This document shows positions 7,920 to 55,518 of a DNA stretch of 64,000 bases, piece by piece. Under the pieces are notes generated by a model. It had not been told where the DNA came from, did not search any database, and was given only the letters and a program-made list of their open reading frames with translations. Made by a program: the position numbers and the translations under genes. The stretch spans positions 1 to 64,000 of the IMG/VR virus record IMGVR_UViG_3300037294_000266; one strand, written 5' to 3'. The first letter of the stretch is position 1. Each line of letters starts with the position of its first letter.

Positions 7920-7986
7920 GGGAAGACTCCTTTGCTACATTGGTAGCGTGGGTTGTGTCACTTTAGTGACGGGTGGGTGTAACTGA

Positions 7987-8280
7987 TTAATCGTACGGCA
8001 GGAAATTGTTTATTGCTTTCCACCACGATTTAACATTGGCGAAGGTGGTCATGAAGCTGCCAATGTAAACTGCACTAGCAAACATCCAATGCTCTATCTC
8101 ACGACTATATGTCACCACGATAGCGGTAACGATACCCCATCCGATAAAGAGCATGATGAGTGTTATGCCAGAGGCCTTAGGAGGCGTTTGATTCAATAGG
8201 TAGCCTACGTGTAGGAAACCGTAGATGGCACACCATGTAAATACAACTGCTCCAATCAGGAGAATTACCCAAAGTTCCAT
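7987..8280 (-). CDS. small membrane protein (3 TM)
   Basis: Three hydrophobic segments. Confidence 0.65.
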   Translation of the reverse strand: MELWVILLIGAVVFTWCAIYGFLHVGYLLNQTPPKASGITLIMLFIGWGIVTAIVVTYSREIEHWMFASAVYIGSFMTTFANVKSWWKAINNFLPYD

Positions 8281-8288
8281 CGTTATTC

Positions 8289-8498
8289 CTAGGGAGGTGA
8301 GTTAAAGTACAGGGCGTATGCAATATACAAAACCCCCCATACAATACCCATGGCTACAGGCCATTCTAGAGCAGATATAACCACCCAACGCAACAGAGCG
8401 ACGCGAAGACCGACGATAGAAAACACCTGCCATTGAGACAGCGTCATCAATGTAGCAATGACCATCGCTATCGCCATCAATAAACCATTGTCAGTCAT
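8289..8498 (-). CDS. small membrane protein
   Basis: Hydrophobic 69 aa, tightly packed in operon. Confidence 0.55.
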   Translation of the reverse strand: MTDNGLLMAIAMVIATLMTLSQWQVFSIVGLRVALLRWVVISALEWPVAMGIVWGVLYIAYALYFNSPP

Positions 8499-23596: not shown

Positions 23597-24541
23597 TTAA
23601 TTAAGATATGTCATGTCGATTGTGACGATCTGATTACTTCTTGCAGCGTCGTCATACAAAGCCTGACCCGGATAAGAAACGCAACCACCGACAATATGTA
23701 ACTCATTTGTGGATTCGTCAATGTGACTCGTGTGGACATAACGACTGGTCTCAAACGTCACTTTGAATTGACGTGGTTTTGCAGAGAGATTCAACAGGTC
23801 GTATCTATCAATGGCACCAGTGCCGCTGATCACGTAAATAAAACGCCCGCGTGAAATTACAGATCCCCATACAGGAGATCGTGGAATAGAAAAGGTGCTC
23901 CACGTGTTAGTGGCAGTGTTGTAAATCTGCATAACCGGGTTTGCAACAGAACCCATAATGAACAGTTTATTATCGTACACTGCCGCAAAATGACCAATTG
24001 CTGTAAACGGCATGTCTGCCATCACATCCCACGTGTTAGTGGCAATGTTGTAAACATGACATTTCCGCGTAGCTGCTTCGTTAGACGCCCAACCGCCCAG
24101 GCGATAAATCTTTCCAGCATTATGTAGAATGATACTGGAGTGGCGATATGGTGTCGGTGCGTCGGCAAGGGGGGTGAGTGTACTCGGCGATGCAGCAATG
24201 GCCCGGCGACGGAAGGTGCCGTTGTAAGCCCCATTGTGACCATCTAGAAAATAAAGGTTGTCGTCAACCCCAATACCACTTGCCCACGTGTAAGTAGACG
24301 GCAATGCTGTTGATGATTTTTGTTTAGTACGTGTATTGAAATGAAGCGCTGTTGTCGGGTATCTGGCAGCGCCCACACCGCCGGAAAGACCACCCAGCAC
24401 TATCAGATCTCCTGTCAGCTTATTGTAACCACCAGCAAAGTTACTCCGACTCCCAGACATGGTATTGATTGATTTTATTGGGACTAATCGGATAGAATCT
24501 ATTTTGAATCTTTCTGCCGCTGCCAGATATAGGCCGTTCAT
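23597..24541 (-). CDS. Kelch-repeat beta-propeller protein (putative adhesin)
   Basis: GKIYRLGG, YNIATNTW, YNTATNTW repeats; start MNGLYLAAAE with GGAG RBS. Confidence 0.8.
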   Translation of the reverse strand: MNGLYLAAAERFKIDSIRLVPIKSINTMSGSRSNFAGGYNKLTGDLIVLGGLSGGVGAARYPTTALHFNTRTKQKSSTALPSTYTWASGIGVDDNLYFLDGHNGAYNGTFRRRAIAASPSTLTPLADAPTPYRHSSIILHNAGKIYRLGGWASNEAATRKCHVYNIATNTWDVMADMPFTAIGHFAAVYDNKLFIMGSVANPVMQIYNTATNTWSTFSIPRSPVWGSVISRGRFIYVISGTGAIDRYDLLNLSAKPRQFKVTFETSRYVHTSHIDESTNELHIVGGCVSYPGQALYDDAARSNQIVTIDMTYLN

Positions 24542-24558
24542 TATAATCTCCGATATAT

Positions 24559-25233
24559 TTAGTTTACAAGCTCTAGCAGAGGGCGCCAGCCCATGCGGGA
24601 AGATGCGTCTGAGAACGTGGTATAGCCGAGATAAGTAACTGTACCGGGAGCCCCGCCGTACCCACGACATACTGCATAATTAGGATTGGCACCATGGACT
24701 TCTTTACAGATTGTAAAACTACCTTGCGACGGAGTGGCTCCTACACCAAGATCGGCATCTGAATACTCTGCCCAGTTTAAGTTACCTCCCTCTGATGTAA
24801 AGCTATCTGCTGCTACGCCATTACAGATATGATACATCAAGCGGTTCCACTCAGATCCATGTGATGCAGGAGCATCTATGCCGACGTTGTTCTGACTTGG
24901 ATCGGAGAAAGATCCTGAGAGGAGCCTTACTTTATACGACTTCCCACCAATAACAACCTGACGAGATCCAGTAATTACACCGACTGCATTCAACTGATCA
25001 CGACTTATTGAATGACGATAAGAACGTTTAGCGATATATTTAATCTTGCCGTCCGTCACATCGAAAAACTTAAGCCATCCGGCAGTAGAGTTCTGACTAA
25101 TGCCTGCTGTAATGCCCATGGCGACCGCTAACGCGTTTCCATTGATAAACTGATCGGCAGCCACTTCACCAAAGAATGTTGTCTTTGTAGGAAGTCTGCC
25201 AATACTTGAAGTCGCCAGTATTAAATTTCTCAT
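24559..25233 (-). CDS. putative virion adhesin, WLKF...GWRPLLE domain
   Basis: Paralog of 4690..5313; start moved to MRNLILATSS. Confidence 0.65.
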   Translation of the reverse strand: MRNLILATSSIGRLPTKTTFFGEVAADQFINGNALAVAMGITAGISQNSTAGWLKFFDVTDGKIKYIAKRSYRHSISRDQLNAVGVITGSRQVVIGGKSYKVRLLSGSFSDPSQNNVGIDAPASHGSEWNRLMYHICNGVAADSFTSEGGNLNWAEYSDADLGVGATPSQGSFTICKEVHGANPNYAVCRGYGGAPGTVTYLGYTTFSDASSRMGWRPLLELVN

Positions 25234-25261
25234 GCGGCACCGTATTAATGATGAGTATGTT

Positions 25262-25627
25262 TCATAGTATTTCACCCCCTGTTACGATGAGATATCCATT
25301 GTCGTCTGCAATCTCCACCATGTGAGAAACAAATAAGTGTCGATGGCAAAACTTACCCGCTGTACAGTAACAAGCTGCAGCAATAGGACCTTCCCGTTGA
25401 AGGAATGATTCAAAGACCTCAGGAGAGGCTCTAAACTGCTCTCTAAGACGCTTTAAGTAAAGTTCCGTATATAGGTCGTCAGAAACCTCACCGCGCTTGT
25501 ATGCCCATAGTACAGAAGCTTCTGGTGCAAAGGGTTTAAACCCCGACTTAACAGTGATGTCGAACAATTCAATGTTTCTAGCCTTAGCCTTACGCCACTG
25601 AGGTATTGCGATTGTATAAAGTTCCAT
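25262..25627 (-). CDS. DUF488-like protein with CYC...CHR motif
   Basis: FAP...YTELYL...ACYCTAGKFCHRH. Confidence 0.55.
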   Translation of the reverse strand: MELYTIAIPQWRKAKARNIELFDITVKSGFKPFAPEASVLWAYKRGEVSDDLYTELYLKRLREQFRASPEVFESFLQREGPIAAACYCTAGKFCHRHLFVSHMVEIADDNGYLIVTGGEIL

Positions 25628-25664
25628 AAGTCACCTCTATACATTACCTGTGATAATTCTGGAA

Positions 25665-26120
25665 GACGGCATAGAAAGAAAGCTGAGTACATCCCCCAAC
25701 GTTTTAATCACTGCACGATCAAAACGTTGGAGGCTGCACTCTGTCAGACACGTTAGCGAGGAGTCGTCGCGTTTATGTCTGAAAGACTCTTTACCCACAA
25801 GGCCGGATGGGTCTAGAGTCTCTTTCTATGCGGCAGTACGGAGAACAAAGCTCAACGCACTATCGTTTACCATCGTGTGCCGCTGGGTAGCGAGGCAGCG
25901 GGCGATGGAACACACAACACTTGGCTATCACGACGAGTTTACCAAGCTGCAACGAATAAGTAGGGAGGAGCCATTGGCTCCTCCCTAGGTACGGCGATCC
26001 ATGGGGGATTGGAAGGCCGTTGCGTTTGAGGACAAGTCCTCAGTGCTTATACGCAATGAAGCGCATTGGGTGGACACTACTCGAGAGTAGATTCTTTTGT
26101 TAAAGAACACGTCCTACATA
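25665..26120 (-). ncRNA. candidate ~455-nt structured non-coding RNA (possibly two)
   Basis: No credible ORF; more than 10 nested stems; G-U pairs mostly favour minus strand; TATG at 5' end, TATGCCG at 3' end. Confidence 0.6.
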
Positions 26121-26140
26121 ACATAGGTGGCTTTTGGCTA

Positions 26141-27664
26141 TCAACCTTCAACCAATGCCATCAGTGCACGCGTATTGGCGCTGCCATCACGTACCGCTGC
26201 GTTTACCCATGTGTCGTAATGTCGAACCAACACATCAGCTGTGGCTGGCAAGAACATGTCGTTTTCCAGGACGAAGTCCTCACCCACACCGCCTGTCAAT
26301 GCAGCACTGCCTTTCTCACTGAGGAGGTTGAGGCTTGAACAGGTGTCGAGTAGACTTGTCACTGCATCACGACGTGCAACCGTGGTTTCAGGAGTCAGTT
26401 TCAGATCGTCAATAACGATGGCTTCTGACAGTGATTCAGTTGAAGCAGTGGAGTCTTCTTCCTCTTCTTCATCGTCGTCCTTGCCATCATCCTTACCGTC
26501 CTTTTCTTCTTCTTCATCGTCACTGCCTTCAGCAGCATCCGCTTCAGTATCGAGATCCACATCGTCAGTGGTGTCTGGAACAACATCGTCCACTGCGGCC
26601 ACATCAGCAGCATCAGGGATTTCATCCAGGCCATCTACGGCGGTGTCGTCTTCACCTTCAGCAGCCGCAACATCGTCTACCGCAGCTTCTTCAGCTTCGG
26701 CTTCGACATCTACCGAAGCATCGGTATCATCGTCAGCTTCTTCTGACCCAACCGCTTCCAATTCCAAGCCGGGTTCACCATCGTCAGCCGCTGCGCCAGT
26801 ATCGACGTCATCGCCAATGGCTTCTGAGTCATCGTCTTCGGTGCCAGTTATATCGGACGAATCGGTAGGCGCTGGAGAATCGTTCTCGACTGTAGCCGCT
26901 GAAACACCATCGGCCAACTGAGGACCTACAGGCAGTTCTTCGCGATGGGCGTCGAGGACGTCGCCCATCTTGTCTTCGCCACCGGCGCCGACACCTTCTG
27001 ATTCGGCACGAGCAGCGTCGGAGATGCCAACTGCTTCTTCATGCGCCTTGTTAACCAGAGTCTCAATGCGATCGACAGCATCAGCCATTTCGCCCAAGAC
27101 CTGAGTTTGACCGATACCTTCCATCGAGATACCGAGCGCTGCAACGCCTTCGCCAGCGCGTGCCATCAAACGCAGCACCATCGGACGAATGGTATCGACA
27201 GACATGTTTTCCATCGAAGCGATCATTACCTTTACATCACCGACATGTTCTTTAAACAGGTCGAGGACTTCGGCGCGGTGATGTACGCTTTCCATCGATG
27301 ACGTTGTTTCGGCGTCACGAGTGGTGAATGGAACTACTTCGTTGGCATCGACCTTGGCCTGGAGAGATTGTTCAATCTCTTCGATCCCGGTCAGGCGGGG
27401 TGTCAAGATGTCCTGCATGATCAGTTCGACGACTGCAGCAGGTTCAGTCACGCCTTCAACGGCAGTGAGGTCGGCCTGATGGTCGGCTGACTCAAGAACG
27501 CCTTCGGTGAGAATCTTGTAAGCCGACGCTGAAGAATCTTCCATTGAGGGCTGAAGAAGAATGGTGCGACCGAGTTCCAGCAACGATTCGAGACTGGTGC
27601 GGTAGCCTTGAGCCTCAGCAAGCATTTGCGAAGCAGTGATTGTTGCAGGTGCAATACGAGTCAT
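26141..27664 (-). CDS. acidic internal head protein with S-x-E processing sites
   Basis: TSLES, PSMED, SSMES, ASMEN, ISMEG, ASTES; long D/E-rich tract. Confidence 0.7.
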   Translation of the reverse strand: MTRIAPATITASQMLAEAQGYRTSLESLLELGRTILLQPSMEDSSASAYKILTEGVLESADHQADLTAVEGVTEPAAVVELIMQDILTPRLTGIEEIEQSLQAKVDANEVVPFTTRDAETTSSMESVHHRAEVLDLFKEHVGDVKVMIASMENMSVDTIRPMVLRLMARAGEGVAALGISMEGIGQTQVLGEMADAVDRIETLVNKAHEEAVGISDAARAESEGVGAGGEDKMGDVLDAHREELPVGPQLADGVSAATVENDSPAPTDSSDITGTEDDDSEAIGDDVDTGAAADDGEPGLELEAVGSEEADDDTDASVDVEAEAEEAAVDDVAAAEGEDDTAVDGLDEIPDAADVAAVDDVVPDTTDDVDLDTEADAAEGSDDEEEEKDGKDDGKDDDEEEEEDSTASTESLSEAIVIDDLKLTPETTVARRDAVTSLLDTCSSLNLLSEKGSAALTGGVGEDFVLENDMFLPATADVLVRHYDTWVNAAVRDGSANTRALMALVEG

Positions 27665-27835: not shown

Positions 27836-29890
27836 ATGTACGCCAGCTTTTCACGACTACTAGGGATCATCTCCGTGAAGGAGACACCGACCCACATCGT
27901 CGTCAGTGGTGTTCCTGGCTTACGGTTGTCCAAAGACATTTATAATGCTTGGAAGACAGGTAAGATCAGTGCGAACCTATTCACTTCGGTTTCTCGGTCA
28001 TCGGTGAAGTTCCCTAAGTTCTATGCGATCGAGATGTTGTACATCCTCGAACACCTGATGCAGTCACGCCGTACCTTTGTAGGGCGCCGTACCCTCAGTA
28101 AGATTGTTGATGAAATGGTGGCCAATACTTGGCTGCATAACATCGGTGGTCAGGACTTCAAAGCACGACTCGATTATTCAAAGCTAGACGAGCTCAACGT
28201 AATCCTGTTCACCTATCAGCGGAAGTTTATTGAAACGTACGACTGGGTGACTTACAAGTACAATCTACTTGGCATGCTGATGGATGTGGCAGCAGGTGGT
28301 GGTAAGACCATTACCAACTACGCCCTTGGCCACTGCCTCAAATCAGACACCTGCATATACGTCGTCCCTAAGAACTCGGTGATTGACGTTTGGGTGAAGA
28401 CAATCAGGTCGTTGTTCAAGACGCCGCAGGACTACTGGTACAGTCTGAGTGGTGTGGAGCCTGAAGCCGGCAAGAAGCATTACATCGTCCATTTCGACTA
28501 CCTGGAGAAGTTCTTAGACTTCGCCAAGAAGAACAAGTCGAAGTTTGGTAAGGTATTCATTGCCATTGATGAGTCGCATAACTTCAACGAAGATTCTGCA
28601 CGTACACGCTTCTTAGTTGATCTCTGCCACACGACCGATGCACGTGATGTCATCCACGCTTCAGGCACTCCATTTAAAGCGATGGGTTCTGAAGCCATTA
28701 CCTTGCTTAAGACAGTCTGTGCAGACTTCACTCCCGAGGTCGAACAGTCGTTCCGTAAGTTGTTTGGTAAGGAGGCCAAGAAAGCCCTTGAGATCTTGGC
28801 TAACCGAATTGGCATCGTGTCGTTTAAGGTGCTCAAAGACGAAGTCGAGACTCCTGGTGTAGATTACTTCGAACGACGCATCAAGATCAAGAACGGCAGT
28901 GACTATACACTGACAGCCGTGCGGGATAAGATGTCTGCGTTCATTACTCAGCGCTTGGAGATGTACAAGAAGCAAATGCCTGAGCATGAACTTATGTACG
29001 GCACATGCCTCGATCTACATGCCAAAGCCATCGGCGGGAGTAGTGCCGCTGTTACTGCGTTCGGTGAGTATAAGCGTAACATTGCGATTCTCCGGAAAGG
29101 TTACGATCCTGTGACCATGAAAGACCTCGTGATGGCCTGTAACCGCTACGAACTCAAAGTAATTGTTCCATCGCTTCCAGATAAGTACCGTAAGCCGTTC
29201 CTTAATGTACGGGCTATCATTAAATACGTCGATCTGAAAGTAATGGGCGAGGCGTTGAGTCAGGTTCTAGGGCGTTTGCGTATTCAGTGTCATTTGGACA
29301 TGCTTCCTGAAATGCCTTTGGATGAGATCATCGATAACTCCAAGAGCAAGACAGTTATCTTTACCAGCTACGTAGAAGTGGTGAAGGAACTTGAGATTCG
29401 TCTGAAGGAAGCTGGTTATAAGCCTCTGGTGGTGTATGGAGAGACTAACAAGGATCTTCCAGCCATCGTCAAGAAGTTTGATAATGACCCTGATGCCAAT
29501 CCATTGATTGCGACATTCAAGAGCCTGTCTACGGCGGTACCGTTGGTTTCAGCTAGCACTGAGATATTCACGAACTCTCCATTCAGGGAGTACGAGCGTA
29601 CCCAGGCGGTTGCACGAGTGGATCGAGTGGGTCAGGTACATCGCTGCTCTATCTACGATACGTTCTTGGACACTGAGATGGATCCAAACATCTCTACCCG
29701 GTCTAAGGACATTCTGGCATGGAGCAAGCAACAGGTCGAGGCGATCCTTGGGGTGCAGACTCCCGATGATCTAGATGTCTCGTTAGAGAACCTGGCTGAA
29801 GTGGACGGTGTCGTGTCTCTGGAATCGGTAGATCGGTTCATTGAGACGTTGTATCTGACTTTCCCCATTGATGTCATTGTCGATCAGTAA
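27836..29890 (+). CDS. SF2 helicase
   Basis: AAGGGKT, DESH, SGTP, KTVIFT, QAVARVDRVGQ. Confidence 0.9.
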   Translation: MYASFSRLLGIISVKETPTHIVVSGVPGLRLSKDIYNAWKTGKISANLFTSVSRSSVKFPKFYAIEMLYILEHLMQSRRTFVGRRTLSKIVDEMVANTWLHNIGGQDFKARLDYSKLDELNVILFTYQRKFIETYDWVTYKYNLLGMLMDVAAGGGKTITNYALGHCLKSDTCIYVVPKNSVIDVWVKTIRSLFKTPQDYWYSLSGVEPEAGKKHYIVHFDYLEKFLDFAKKNKSKFGKVFIAIDESHNFNEDSARTRFLVDLCHTTDARDVIHASGTPFKAMGSEAITLLKTVCADFTPEVEQSFRKLFGKEAKKALEILANRIGIVSFKVLKDEVETPGVDYFERRIKIKNGSDYTLTAVRDKMSAFITQRLEMYKKQMPEHELMYGTCLDLHAKAIGGSSAAVTAFGEYKRNIAILRKGYDPVTMKDLVMACNRYELKVIVPSLPDKYRKPFLNVRAIIKYVDLKVMGEALSQVLGRLRIQCHLDMLPEMPLDEIIDNSKSKTVIFTSYVEVVKELEIRLKEAGYKPLVVYGETNKDLPAIVKKFDNDPDANPLIATFKSLSTAVPLVSASTEIFTNSPFREYERTQAVARVDRVGQVHRCSIYDTFLDTEMDPNISTRSKDILAWSKQQVEAILGVQTPDDLDVSLENLAEVDGVVSLESVDRFIETLYLTFPIDVIVDQ

Positions 29891-36119: not shown

Positions 36120-36159
36120 TAGATAAAGTTTAAATCTATAGGATAGGTACTACAAAAAT

Positions 36160-36960
36160 AAAAGAAAAAAGGCTTTGGGGTAACTCTTTGGCTAGCGAGC
36201 CCAGGGATGATCAATCCCCAGTCGTTAGCAATCTAAGAGTTCCCCGTGACCCTACAACATGACACTGACCTAAGACGGCCTTGGATTAAAATCCAATAAG
36301 TTCGAACTTAATCGATTTGAGTTTGGTTCGGTCTGTTTATACCGAGACTAGTCTTAGCTAACGAGTACCTTAAACACGCGCTTTGAGTCCTCTCGGTTGC
36401 TGAGGCTGCAATACTGAAACCCAGTGTGGCACACAATCCAATCAGACGATCGCCGTTCGAAGTTCCCACCTGCTCGTTCTTTTACAAACGAGTGCGAACG
36501 AATGATCCATTTCCACAGATCATCTTCCGAGTATGGGTTATCTTGAGGGGCTTCGGCTGATGAAGTTTTCCAGTACTGGACTGGTTCTTCGATGGCGCAT
36601 GCGACACTACAGTTCAGTAAGGCAGCGAGAGCAATTGCTCCGATGCTGATCGTTAACGCTCCATGGTCCGGGTTGGGATTGATCTTCTCGTCAGTATACT
36701 GGTAATACAGCTCACGGGAGCCACCCTTACGACCGCCTTATGATCGTGGGTGGCGGCGATGCCTGTTAGTGCGCTGATGGAGATGCCTGTAGATCGTAGA
36801 GGGGTCAGCTTAGCCAGAGGCCCCAGCCTCAAACTGCCAATCGAACGCACCAGCGATACAACTCGCCAGATTGTACGTGACCAAAATAGACTTCCAAGTA
36901 ACCCACCTGAGAGGAATCCGAACATTGCTGTCCTTATGATTCAGTTATCGGGAGTTTCAC
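36160..36960 (-). ncRNA. candidate ~800-nt multi-domain structured non-coding RNA
   Basis: Largest gene-free gap; more than 12 stems including a long-range 13-bp helix; GNRA loops on minus strand; TATG at 36960-36963; terminal stem plus U-tract. Confidence 0.65.
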
Positions 36961-36996
36961 ATAGATCATGTAACTATCGTAAATAAATACGGATGG

Positions 36997-54791: not shown

Positions 54792-54875
54792 GAGGTATAC
54801 CTCTAATTAAACAAAAAAGAAAGGATCGTCATAGGATAGAACAAAAAAGAAAAGGATAGACTAGTCTCCTTTTCT

Positions 54876-55085
54876 TTATGCATTGAAGCGATAGACAGAC
54901 TTCTGAACAGCAAAAGTCATGTTATTCCACAGTTCAATATGAATACCAGCATCGCTGATAGCAATGTCCAAGATGACCTGAGCAGACAGTTTCTTAGCGA
55001 TGATGATGGCAGTCAGTTTATCAACGCCTGCTTTGATAAGAGCAGTTACGTTTTCCAACATACGAGTTTGTTTGATAGTGTACAT
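54876..55085 (-). CDS. small early protein
   Basis: AGGAG RBS, 69 aa. Confidence 0.65.
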   Translation of the reverse strand: MYTIKQTRMLENVTALIKAGVDKLTAIIIAKKLSAQVILDIAISDAGIHIELWNNMTFAVQKSVYRFNA

Positions 55086-55147
55086 GATGAATCTCCTTTA
55101 AGCGCATAAAAGAGAGAGTGGAAATCCACTCTCTCTAGATTTAGATG

Positions 55148-55258
55148 TTACTTGGTAGCTAGAGCATCCTCTAGCAACTTACTTTGCTTTACAATGACCT
55201 GATGGCCCATGTATGCAATGATACCGCCGATAGTAAAACCGATGATAAATTTAGTCAT
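55148..55258 (-). CDS. 36-aa membrane peptide (not in ORF track)
   Basis: MTKFIIGFTIGGIIAYMGHQVIVKQSKLLEDALATK*; AGGAG RBS. Confidence 0.7.
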   Translation of the reverse strand: MTKFIIGFTIGGIIAYMGHQVIVKQSKLLEDALATK

Positions 55259-55269
55259 GTCAATACTCC

Positions 55270-55389
55270 TTATTCTGAAATAGTTTTGCTTACAGCAGCC
55301 AGTGCATCATGAATAGCCTTGTTACGAGACTGTTCAGTGATACCCACGACAACCCAGTAGCCAACAATAATACCTAGAAATACTTTCAT
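55270..55389 (-). CDS. 39-aa membrane peptide (not in ORF track)
   Basis: MKVFLGIIVGYWVVVGITEQSRNKAIHDALAAVSKTISE*; AGGAG RBS; first gene after promoter 55441. Confidence 0.7.
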   Translation of the reverse strand: MKVFLGIIVGYWVVVGITEQSRNKAIHDALAAVSKTISE

Positions 55390-55440
55390 ACTGATCTCCT
55401 AGACCACGGTTAGAGGAAGATCGTTCTTCCTATTCACCTG

Positions 55441-55470
55441 TACTATGTATTGTTGAAATAAATTCGAATC
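55441..55470 (-). promoter_or_regulatory. putative early promoter
   Basis: TTCGAA-N13-TACATA. Confidence 0.7.
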
Positions 55471-55518
55471 GCATTTCTAGAATTCTATGGGGTTGGTGTT
55501 TAATCGAGAGGATTCAAA

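Follow-up and report, generated by a model that had tools for sequence, protein, structure and literature searches.

The window analyzed here, the whole stretch of 64,000 nucleotides, is the first 64 kb of a 266,646-bp viral record (IMGVR_UViG_3300037294_000266). The record encodes a homologue of chimallin (phiKZ gp54) at genome coordinates 153359-155155 (E 2.4e-26, 25% identity over residues 19-619), indicating a nucleus-forming, phiKZ-related jumbo phage. Its nearest cultured relative is the Pseudomonas aeruginosa phage pPa_SNUABM_DT01 (hereafter DT01). Within the window, a 513-nt gap (25628-26140) without a conserved ORF lies between two minus-strand genes, one coding for a 507-aa orphan protein with a long acidic stretch, upstream, and the other for a DUF488 protein, downstream. 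An earlier note, based on the sequence alone, had proposed that this region specifies a structured non-coding RNA of about 455 nt, of an unrecognized family, with a four-way junction and a late-type TATG promoter. We found that all the stems listed in that note are present in the window. The features of the locus, as they emerge from the analyses described below, are the following.

26141..27664 (-), upstream gene coding for a 507-aa orphan protein, with a helical N-domain, an acidic disordered stretch of about 160 residues and a small C-domain in the predicted model
26117..26126 (-), promoter-like block CTATGTTATG (family consensus GTATAGTATG), with the predicted transcription start at the G at 26117; a second, non-aligned TATG ends at 26122
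25672..26117 (-), predicted non-coding RNA of about 445 nt, with a 3' end that is uncertain within about 25664-25685
26077..26116 (-), 5' leader, with the family helix P1, AGGA (26115-26112) with UCUU (26106-26103), followed by the conserved UUYACAA, and, in the window, lineage-specific hairpins 26108-26102/26097-26091 and 26090-26086/26081-26077
26049..26066 (-), P2 hairpin, AUGCGC/GCGUAU, with a 6-nt loop
26027..26042 (-), V2 hairpin, UGAGGA/UCCUCA
25991..26020 (-), V3 hairpin (26020-26016/25995-25991 and 26013-26010/26001-25998) with a C-run loop, AUCCCCCA
25961..25987 (-), V4, a 12-bp G+C-rich hairpin (25961-25972/25976-25987)
25863..25955 (-), central domain, closed by the long-range helix UCGUU (25955-25951) with AACGA (25867-25863)
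25919..25947 (-), hairpin GCUUGGU/GCCAAGU, with a nearly invariant loop (AACUCGUCGUGAUA)
25870..25908 (-), V5 hairpin (CCAUCG/CGAUGG and CCGCUG/CAGCGG) with the conserved loop CGCUACC
25834..25862 (-), hairpin UAGUGCG/CGUACUG with an inner GAGC/GUUC helix (family consensus GGUGCG...CGCACC)
25802..25834 (-), possible pseudoknot between the junction GCCG (25834-25831; GCUG in the family) and CGGC in the V6 loop (25805-25802)
25785..25820 (-), V6 hairpin (25820-25815/25790-25785 and 25812-25807/25798-25793) with the conserved loop AUCCGGCY
25744..25782 (-), V7 hairpin (25782-25775/25751-25744 and 25770-25767/25759-25756) with the conserved loop CCRCUCCUC
25685..25741 (-), last hairpin, 7 bp (25685-25691/25735-25741) plus 18 bp (25693-25710/25716-25733), with the conserved core GCAGCCUCCA/UGGGGGAUG
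25669..25684 (-), U-rich tail (UUUCUUUCUAUGC), the likely terminator tract and, in this window, also the 3' strand of an 11-bp closing stem with 25821-25831
25637..25647 (-), second promoter-like box, GTAATGTATAG, just upstream of the DUF488 ribosome-binding site
25262..25627 (-), downstream gene coding for a 121-aa DUF488 protein, homologous to phiKZ gp151

To test whether the gap folds better than expected by chance, we compared its folding energy with that of shuffled sequences. On the minus strand the gap folds at -200.5 kcal/mol, against -143.9 +/- 7.3 for shuffles (z -7.74), and on the plus strand z is -4.45, with 0 of 100 shuffles as good. In contrast, other ORF-poor gaps of the window reach only z -2.0 to -2.9. 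Thus, the structure seen in the sequence is real and far beyond chance.

The gap is conserved in related jumbo phages

DT01 has a gap of the same length at the same place, with z -6.93 and no annotated feature in GenBank. Protein-guided and motif-guided searches brought in further jumbo-phage contigs, most of them from records of 160-277 kb and a few from shorter contigs (individual sequences are designated here by L numbers). A scan of IMG/VR with the single motif AGAGTGCAGCCTCCA gave 17 hits, all of which were due to chance, as none shows blastn similarity to the RNA. A two-motif pattern, applied to metagenome and genome collections, found real members (L043-L046, L048 and L050) but also unrelated sequences (L047, L049, L051, L052 and L053), which were excluded after alignment; a strict two-motif scan of 185,579 prokaryote genomes gave only two unrelated hits. 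After removal of chance hits, 19 distinct members were aligned. Four additional contigs were then fetched only through the upstream acidic protein, and all four carry the RNA in a gap of 488-523 nt. This successful blind prediction brings the family to 23 sequences, in which the gap is about 500 nt long and free of ORFs.

We then built a covariance model of the central domain. The model finds exactly one copy per member genome, at E 1e-14 to 1e-29, but nothing better than E 0.5 in the complete genomes of nine other chimallin-type phages, phiKZ, 201phi2-1, PhiPA3, EL, OBP, SPN3US, PhiEaH1, Moabite and pEa_SNUABM_54. Thus, the RNA appears confined to one clade of chimallin-encoding jumbo phages. 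In every locus examined it lies directly downstream of the gene for the orphan acidic protein. This protein also appears confined to the same clade: it has no Pfam or PHROG match, no similarity to phiKZ gp152 by BLASTP or hhalign, and the DT01 protein as its only structural match.

None of the 4227 families of Rfam 15 matches at gathering score in the whole window. The best hit in 25400-26400 is to a microRNA model (E 0.073), which we regard as noise, and six relatives gave no consistent hit at E up to 5. Moreover, no tRNA or tmRNA gene was found in the window with ARAGORN, and searches for papers on such an RNA, or on DT01, turned up none describing it.

Covariation supports a conserved fold on the minus strand

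RNAalifold on the 19 full-length sequences gave 64 consensus pairs, 35 of them with compensatory double changes. In the central domain, 98.3-98.5% of the cells form standard pairs, against 83-85% when the 3' partners are shuffled and 28-61% when partners are slid by 1-3 columns. Seventeen of 29 pairs show changes on both sides, against about 10-11 in shuffles and 2-8 in the slid controls, and none of 500 shuffles reaches any measure. The sequences are related, so the shuffle controls overstate significance, but the slid-partner controls do not have that weakness. The homologue covariation test suggested in the earlier note is therefore passed strongly.

Within the central domain, the closing helix UCGUU/AACGA is paired in 100% of the cells, and the only changes are C-G to U-G. 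This helix is not in the minimum-energy fold of the window itself and comes from the family consensus. All 7 pairs of the GCUUGGU/GCCAAGU hairpin vary while 100% of the cells are paired, and at least 6 show changes on both sides. Changes on both sides were also found for 5 of the 6 pairs in the outer helix of V5, and for four pairs in the hairpin at 25834-25862. In the last hairpin there are 9 pairs with compensatory change. Compensatory changes are also seen in V4, which many relatives cap with a UUCG loop. P2, in contrast, is nearly invariant in sequence, with 16-18 of 19 sequences carrying the same pair.

The variable hairpins V2-V4, V6-V7 and the last hairpin cannot be aligned well by sequence, and a MAFFT alignment of the 5' domain was too poor for RNAalifold, which found only 4 pairs. 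We therefore folded these modules member by member. They fold into the same architecture in every member, except that V6 is absent in L028 and L030, and the mean module z-scores are -5.3, -3.2 and -7.1. The V2-V4 module has z -3.0 to -9.0 in 19 of 19 members, and the last hairpin z -4.5 to -9.6. The V2 hairpin varies in sequence but is kept in every member. The C-run loop of V3 is kept in the main subclade and absent in L026, L048, L029, L028 and L030, whereas the V7 loop is invariant at CUCCU in 19 of 19 members. Throughout, stems vary and stay paired while several loops and junctions are nearly invariant, as exemplified by the loops of the GCUUGGU/GCCAAGU hairpin, V5, V6 and V7, by GGUAAACGA, and by the core of the last hairpin.

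Three details of the earlier note did not hold up as conserved features. The 11-bp stem drawn as closing the four-way junction (25669-25679/25821-25831) is specific to this window: duplex z is -5.0 in the window, -2.4 in L024 and -0.47 on average over 18 members, and in most members only a purine-rich strand faces the U-rich tail. The three hairpins that it encloses are nevertheless conserved, apart from the lack of V6 in two members. The TTGCGT/ACGCAA stem competes with the conserved P2 hairpin, and the GGAC/GTCC three-way junction lies in the lineage-variable 5' leader. In that leader, P1 covaries, since AGGA/UCUU becomes AGAG/CUCU in L026 and L048. As the V7 loop does not change, the local P1 hairpin was preferred to a long-range pairing of the 5' AGGA with UCCU in the V7 loop.

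RNAalifold also proposes the pseudoknot between the junction and the V6 loop, but the support for it is weak. The pairing is almost invariant, with two one-sided compatible changes and two breaks. A kissing dimer through the CCGG palindrome of the V6 loop was not supported because L024 has UCGG; pairing of that loop with the GCUG junction fits L024 and L029 better.

The consensus pairs contain 203 G-U cells but only 42 A-C cells, and the sense strand, minus in the window, is more stable in 19 of 19 members, by 20 kcal/mol on average. The longest ORFs differ in position, frame and length from member to member. This is an RNA-level structure on the minus strand, not a protein gene or a DNA cruciform.

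The inferred transcription unit

The best-conserved block of the family alignment is GTATAGTATG, followed by GUAGGAC. The late promoters of phiKZ are defined by TATG, with the G as +1 (PMC4666361), which would place the start at 26117. TATG is aligned in 18 of 19 members, embedded in this block; the remaining one, L026, has TGTG at the presumed start. The extended form GTA-N3-TATG occurs 14 times in the genome, 7 of them in the roughly 10% that is intergenic, mostly 40-85 nt upstream of ORFs.

At the other end, every member has a U-rich tract after the last long hairpin. A G+C-rich hairpin followed by a U-run is clear in many relatives, for example L023, L025, L027 and L021, and L028 and L030 add a separate classic terminator hairpin. 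In the window, although a terminator-like site is flagged at 25700-25682, the tract (UUUCUUUCU) is interrupted by C and starts 3 nt after the stem, so that read-through into DUF488 is possible. Between the tract and the DUF488 ribosome-binding site lies the second promoter-like box, conserved as GGTAnnnTATAG in most relatives. Moreover, in L029 and L048 an extra gene, an unknown 156-aa ORF and a Kelch-repeat protein gene, respectively, separates the RNA from DUF488, and in both the RNA still directly follows the acidic protein gene. Together, these observations favor an independent RNA gene, from 26117 to about 25672, over a leader of DUF488. In the absence of expression data, however, the start, the end, the abundance and the timing are all inferred.

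Our best explanation is that the gap holds an independent gene for a non-coding RNA of about 445 nt, with a conserved fold of at least 11 helices in three domains, which the RNA polymerase of the phage would transcribe from the G of the conserved TATG, with DUF488 started afresh from its own promoter-like box. We give this explanation as a whole, including the mode of action considered below, a probability of about 0.6. That the region specifies a real structured RNA is very likely, and that it forms its own transcription unit is likely.

Alternative explanations

It seems possible, although unlikely, that the RNA belongs functionally to the upstream acidic protein gene, either as a structured 3' UTR or processing product of that mRNA or as the RNA partner of that protein. 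Their adjacency in every locus examined, including L029 and L048, and their apparent confinement to the same clade would agree with this view. However, the RNA has its own strongly conserved promoter-like block just after the stop codon, and the adjacency could simply reflect shared ancestry within one clade. The model of the protein, a helical bundle with an acidic disordered stretch, shows no recognizable RNA-binding fold, and no PDB match with E below 0.5 was found.

Somewhat less likely, the RNA could be a cis-acting leader of DUF488, of the riboswitch, T-box or attenuator type, in which a large sensing domain would decide whether the last hairpin and the U-rich tract terminate transcription. 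The RNA lies directly upstream of DUF488, on the same strand, in 21 of the 23 members, and ends in a hairpin followed by a U-rich tract. In the main subclade, by our reading of the alignment, the C-run in the V3 loop is complementary to the G-run in the 3' strand of the last hairpin, which could in principle give alternative pairings. Nevertheless, the C-run loop is missing in five members, and no conserved alternative pairing was found. The promoter-like box upstream of DUF488 and the displacement of DUF488 in L029 and L048 also speak against a leader. Furthermore, the DUF488 homologues of phiKZ, SPN3US, PhiEaH1, Moabite and pEa_SNUABM_54 have no such leader, and no riboswitch or T-box model matches.

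The earlier note had also considered two RNAs of about 160 and 290 nt, split at the 12-bp hairpin, a division that is neither supported nor excluded but that we consider doubtful. The hairpin is G+C-rich, present in all members, and flagged, with its tail CUUAUUCGUU, as terminator-like. The tail, however, is not a U-run, and no promoter-like TATG block is conserved after the hairpin. The bases that follow it (UUCGUU) pair with AAACGA 90 nt downstream in every member, which argues for one continuous fold.

A self-splicing intron, an intron remnant or another mobile RNA element is very unlikely: although phiKZ-like phages carry several introns (PMC11512511) and the size would fit an ORF-less group I intron, no group I or group II model matches even at E up to 5-10 in seven members, the flanking ORFs end in a stop codon and begin with a ribosome-binding site plus ATG, the two genes are separate in phiKZ, with a 76-nt spacer, and there is one copy per genome at a fixed site. 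Equally improbable is a DNA-level element (origin, packaging site or cruciform) or a chance fold in decayed coding sequence, since, although the plus strand also folds better than shuffles, as any inverted-repeat-rich DNA would, the 203 G-U cells would become A-C mismatches on the other strand or in DNA, and the compensatory changes preserve pairing rather than sequence.

Possible mode of action and relation to known RNAs

The many covarying struts holding invariant loops and junctions, together with the long-range helices and the possible pseudoknot, are the anatomy of RNAs that act through a defined three-dimensional fold. We therefore propose, tentatively, that the RNA works in trans as a compactly folded molecule, made from a late-type promoter inside the phage nucleus. 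Its invariant loops and junctions would make tertiary contacts or bind a protein partner, in a ribonucleoprotein (RNP) scaffold, an RNA-only assembly or a ribozyme-like fold, although no partner protein or tertiary contact was demonstrated. The constant adjacency to the orphan acidic protein makes that protein the first candidate partner. On this tentative view, the RNA would not work as a leader of the next gene, nor as an antisense regulator. The reverse complements of eight conserved loops or junctions (12-21 nt) occur nowhere else in the 266.6-kb phage genome with 0 or 1 mismatch, apart from one 1-mismatch hit for the V7 loop, a comparison that does not extend to host targets.

The closest analogues in kind are the GOLLD and ROOL RNAs of phages and prophages, which are also phage-encoded, non-coding and hundreds of nucleotides long, with many covarying helices and conserved loops and no known function or protein partner (PMC5737381; 10.1101/2024.12.08.627333). 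Cryo-EM showed that their conserved loops make kissing and A-minor contacts (10.1101/2024.12.08.627333). Their Rfam models, however, do not match this RNA, which is shorter (many GOLLD members exceed 800 nt), is not near tRNA genes within the window, and is found in nucleus-forming jumbo phages of Gram-negative hosts. The sRNAs of giant phages, 201phi2-1 sRNA005 and the phiKZ sRNA upstream of gp182, are conserved by position across genera, but are under 250 nt, arise by premature termination in a 5' UTR and lie upstream of a tail gene (PMC11512511). The RNA described here sits at another locus and has a far more elaborate fold. The phi29 pRNA is unrelated in sequence, and nothing here links our RNA to packaging. 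Relative to Staphylococcus aureus RNAIII, with which it is not homologous, it has long-range helices and invariant loops that are not C-rich, and we found no extended complementarity to any site in the phage genome, only generic anti-SD-like loops.

It also remains possible, though less likely than not, that this is a new class of large 'ornate' RNA specific to one lineage of nucleus-forming jumbo phages, acting as a ribozyme, an RNA-only assembly or the RNA core of a phage RNP, possibly together with the acidic protein, in a late-phase role for which no protein or RNA analogue is known in phiKZ-type phages. As an RNA family it is new; as a kind of object, a large structured phage RNA of unknown function, it has precedents. 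Large bacterial and phage RNAs with elaborate conserved folds are rare, and the few known classes (RNase P, group I and II introns, tmRNA, OLE, GOLLD, ROOL and HEARO) have each turned out to be catalysts, RNP cores or unexpected assemblies. This one sits in nucleus-forming jumbo phages, including a cultured phage of P. aeruginosa, whose RNA biology, with transcription inside a protein shell, export and ribosome take-over, is an active open field.

Neighboring genes and other gaps

The protein encoded directly upstream of the RNA (26141-27664, minus strand) is an orphan. We found 62 homologues in a set of 5.8 billion proteins, none of them informatively named. The protein has no Pfam or PHROG family and no fold match apart from the orthologue of Pseudomonas phage pPa_SNUABM_DT01, and about 160 of its residues are acidic and predicted to be disordered. 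Two further minus-strand ORFs of the window, which overlap by 112 nt, match successive parts of the same PHROG "virion structural protein" profile (511 positions):
23597-24670 (-), matching profile positions 33-218
24559-25275 (-), matching profile positions 246-356 and carrying Kelch repeats
These ORFs may represent one gene split by a frameshift, or adjacent related pieces. In one relative, L074 (1-2452, minus strand), the divergently transcribed helicase homologue is 1068 aa long and carries a LAGLIDADG_3 domain, probably an intein or homing-endonuclease insertion, which is absent from the 684-aa helicase of the window (27836-29890).

The folding energies of other ORF-poor gaps of the window were compared with those of shuffled sequences. 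The gaps at 36120-36996, 7920-8498 and 54792-55518 folded only slightly better than the shuffles (z of -2.0, -2.5 and -2.9, respectively), and the second contains a small hydrophobic ORF. None resembles the RNA described here.

The 3' junction and promoter-like motifs

The tail of the RNA contains another TATG (25670-25673, minus strand; UAUGCC, with its G at 25670). This element, however, is present in only about 7 of 19 members, and it is therefore not a conserved start. A variant box, GTAATGTATAG (25637-25647, minus strand), lies 10 nt upstream of the DUF488 ribosome-binding site and is conserved as GGTAnnnTATAG in most relatives; it is probably that gene's own promoter. In two relatives, a gene has been inserted between the RNA and DUF488: a six-blade Kelch-repeat protein in L048 (752-1762) and an unknown ORF in L029 (748-1218). 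Thus, the junction following the U-tract of the RNA tolerates insertions.

A bipartite promoter-like motif, GTA-N3-TATG or TAT-NN-TATG, was also noted at the following sites:
window: 8338 (-), 18606 (+), 5999 (-) and 54838 (-)
genome: 121200 (-), 121504 (-), 171902 (-) and 221963 (-)
Of the 14 GTA-N3-TATG hits, 7 are in intergenic DNA, usually 40-85 nt upstream of a same-strand ORF. Three sites outside the window have no ORF of 70 aa or more within 200 nt downstream, and could mark further non-coding transcripts.
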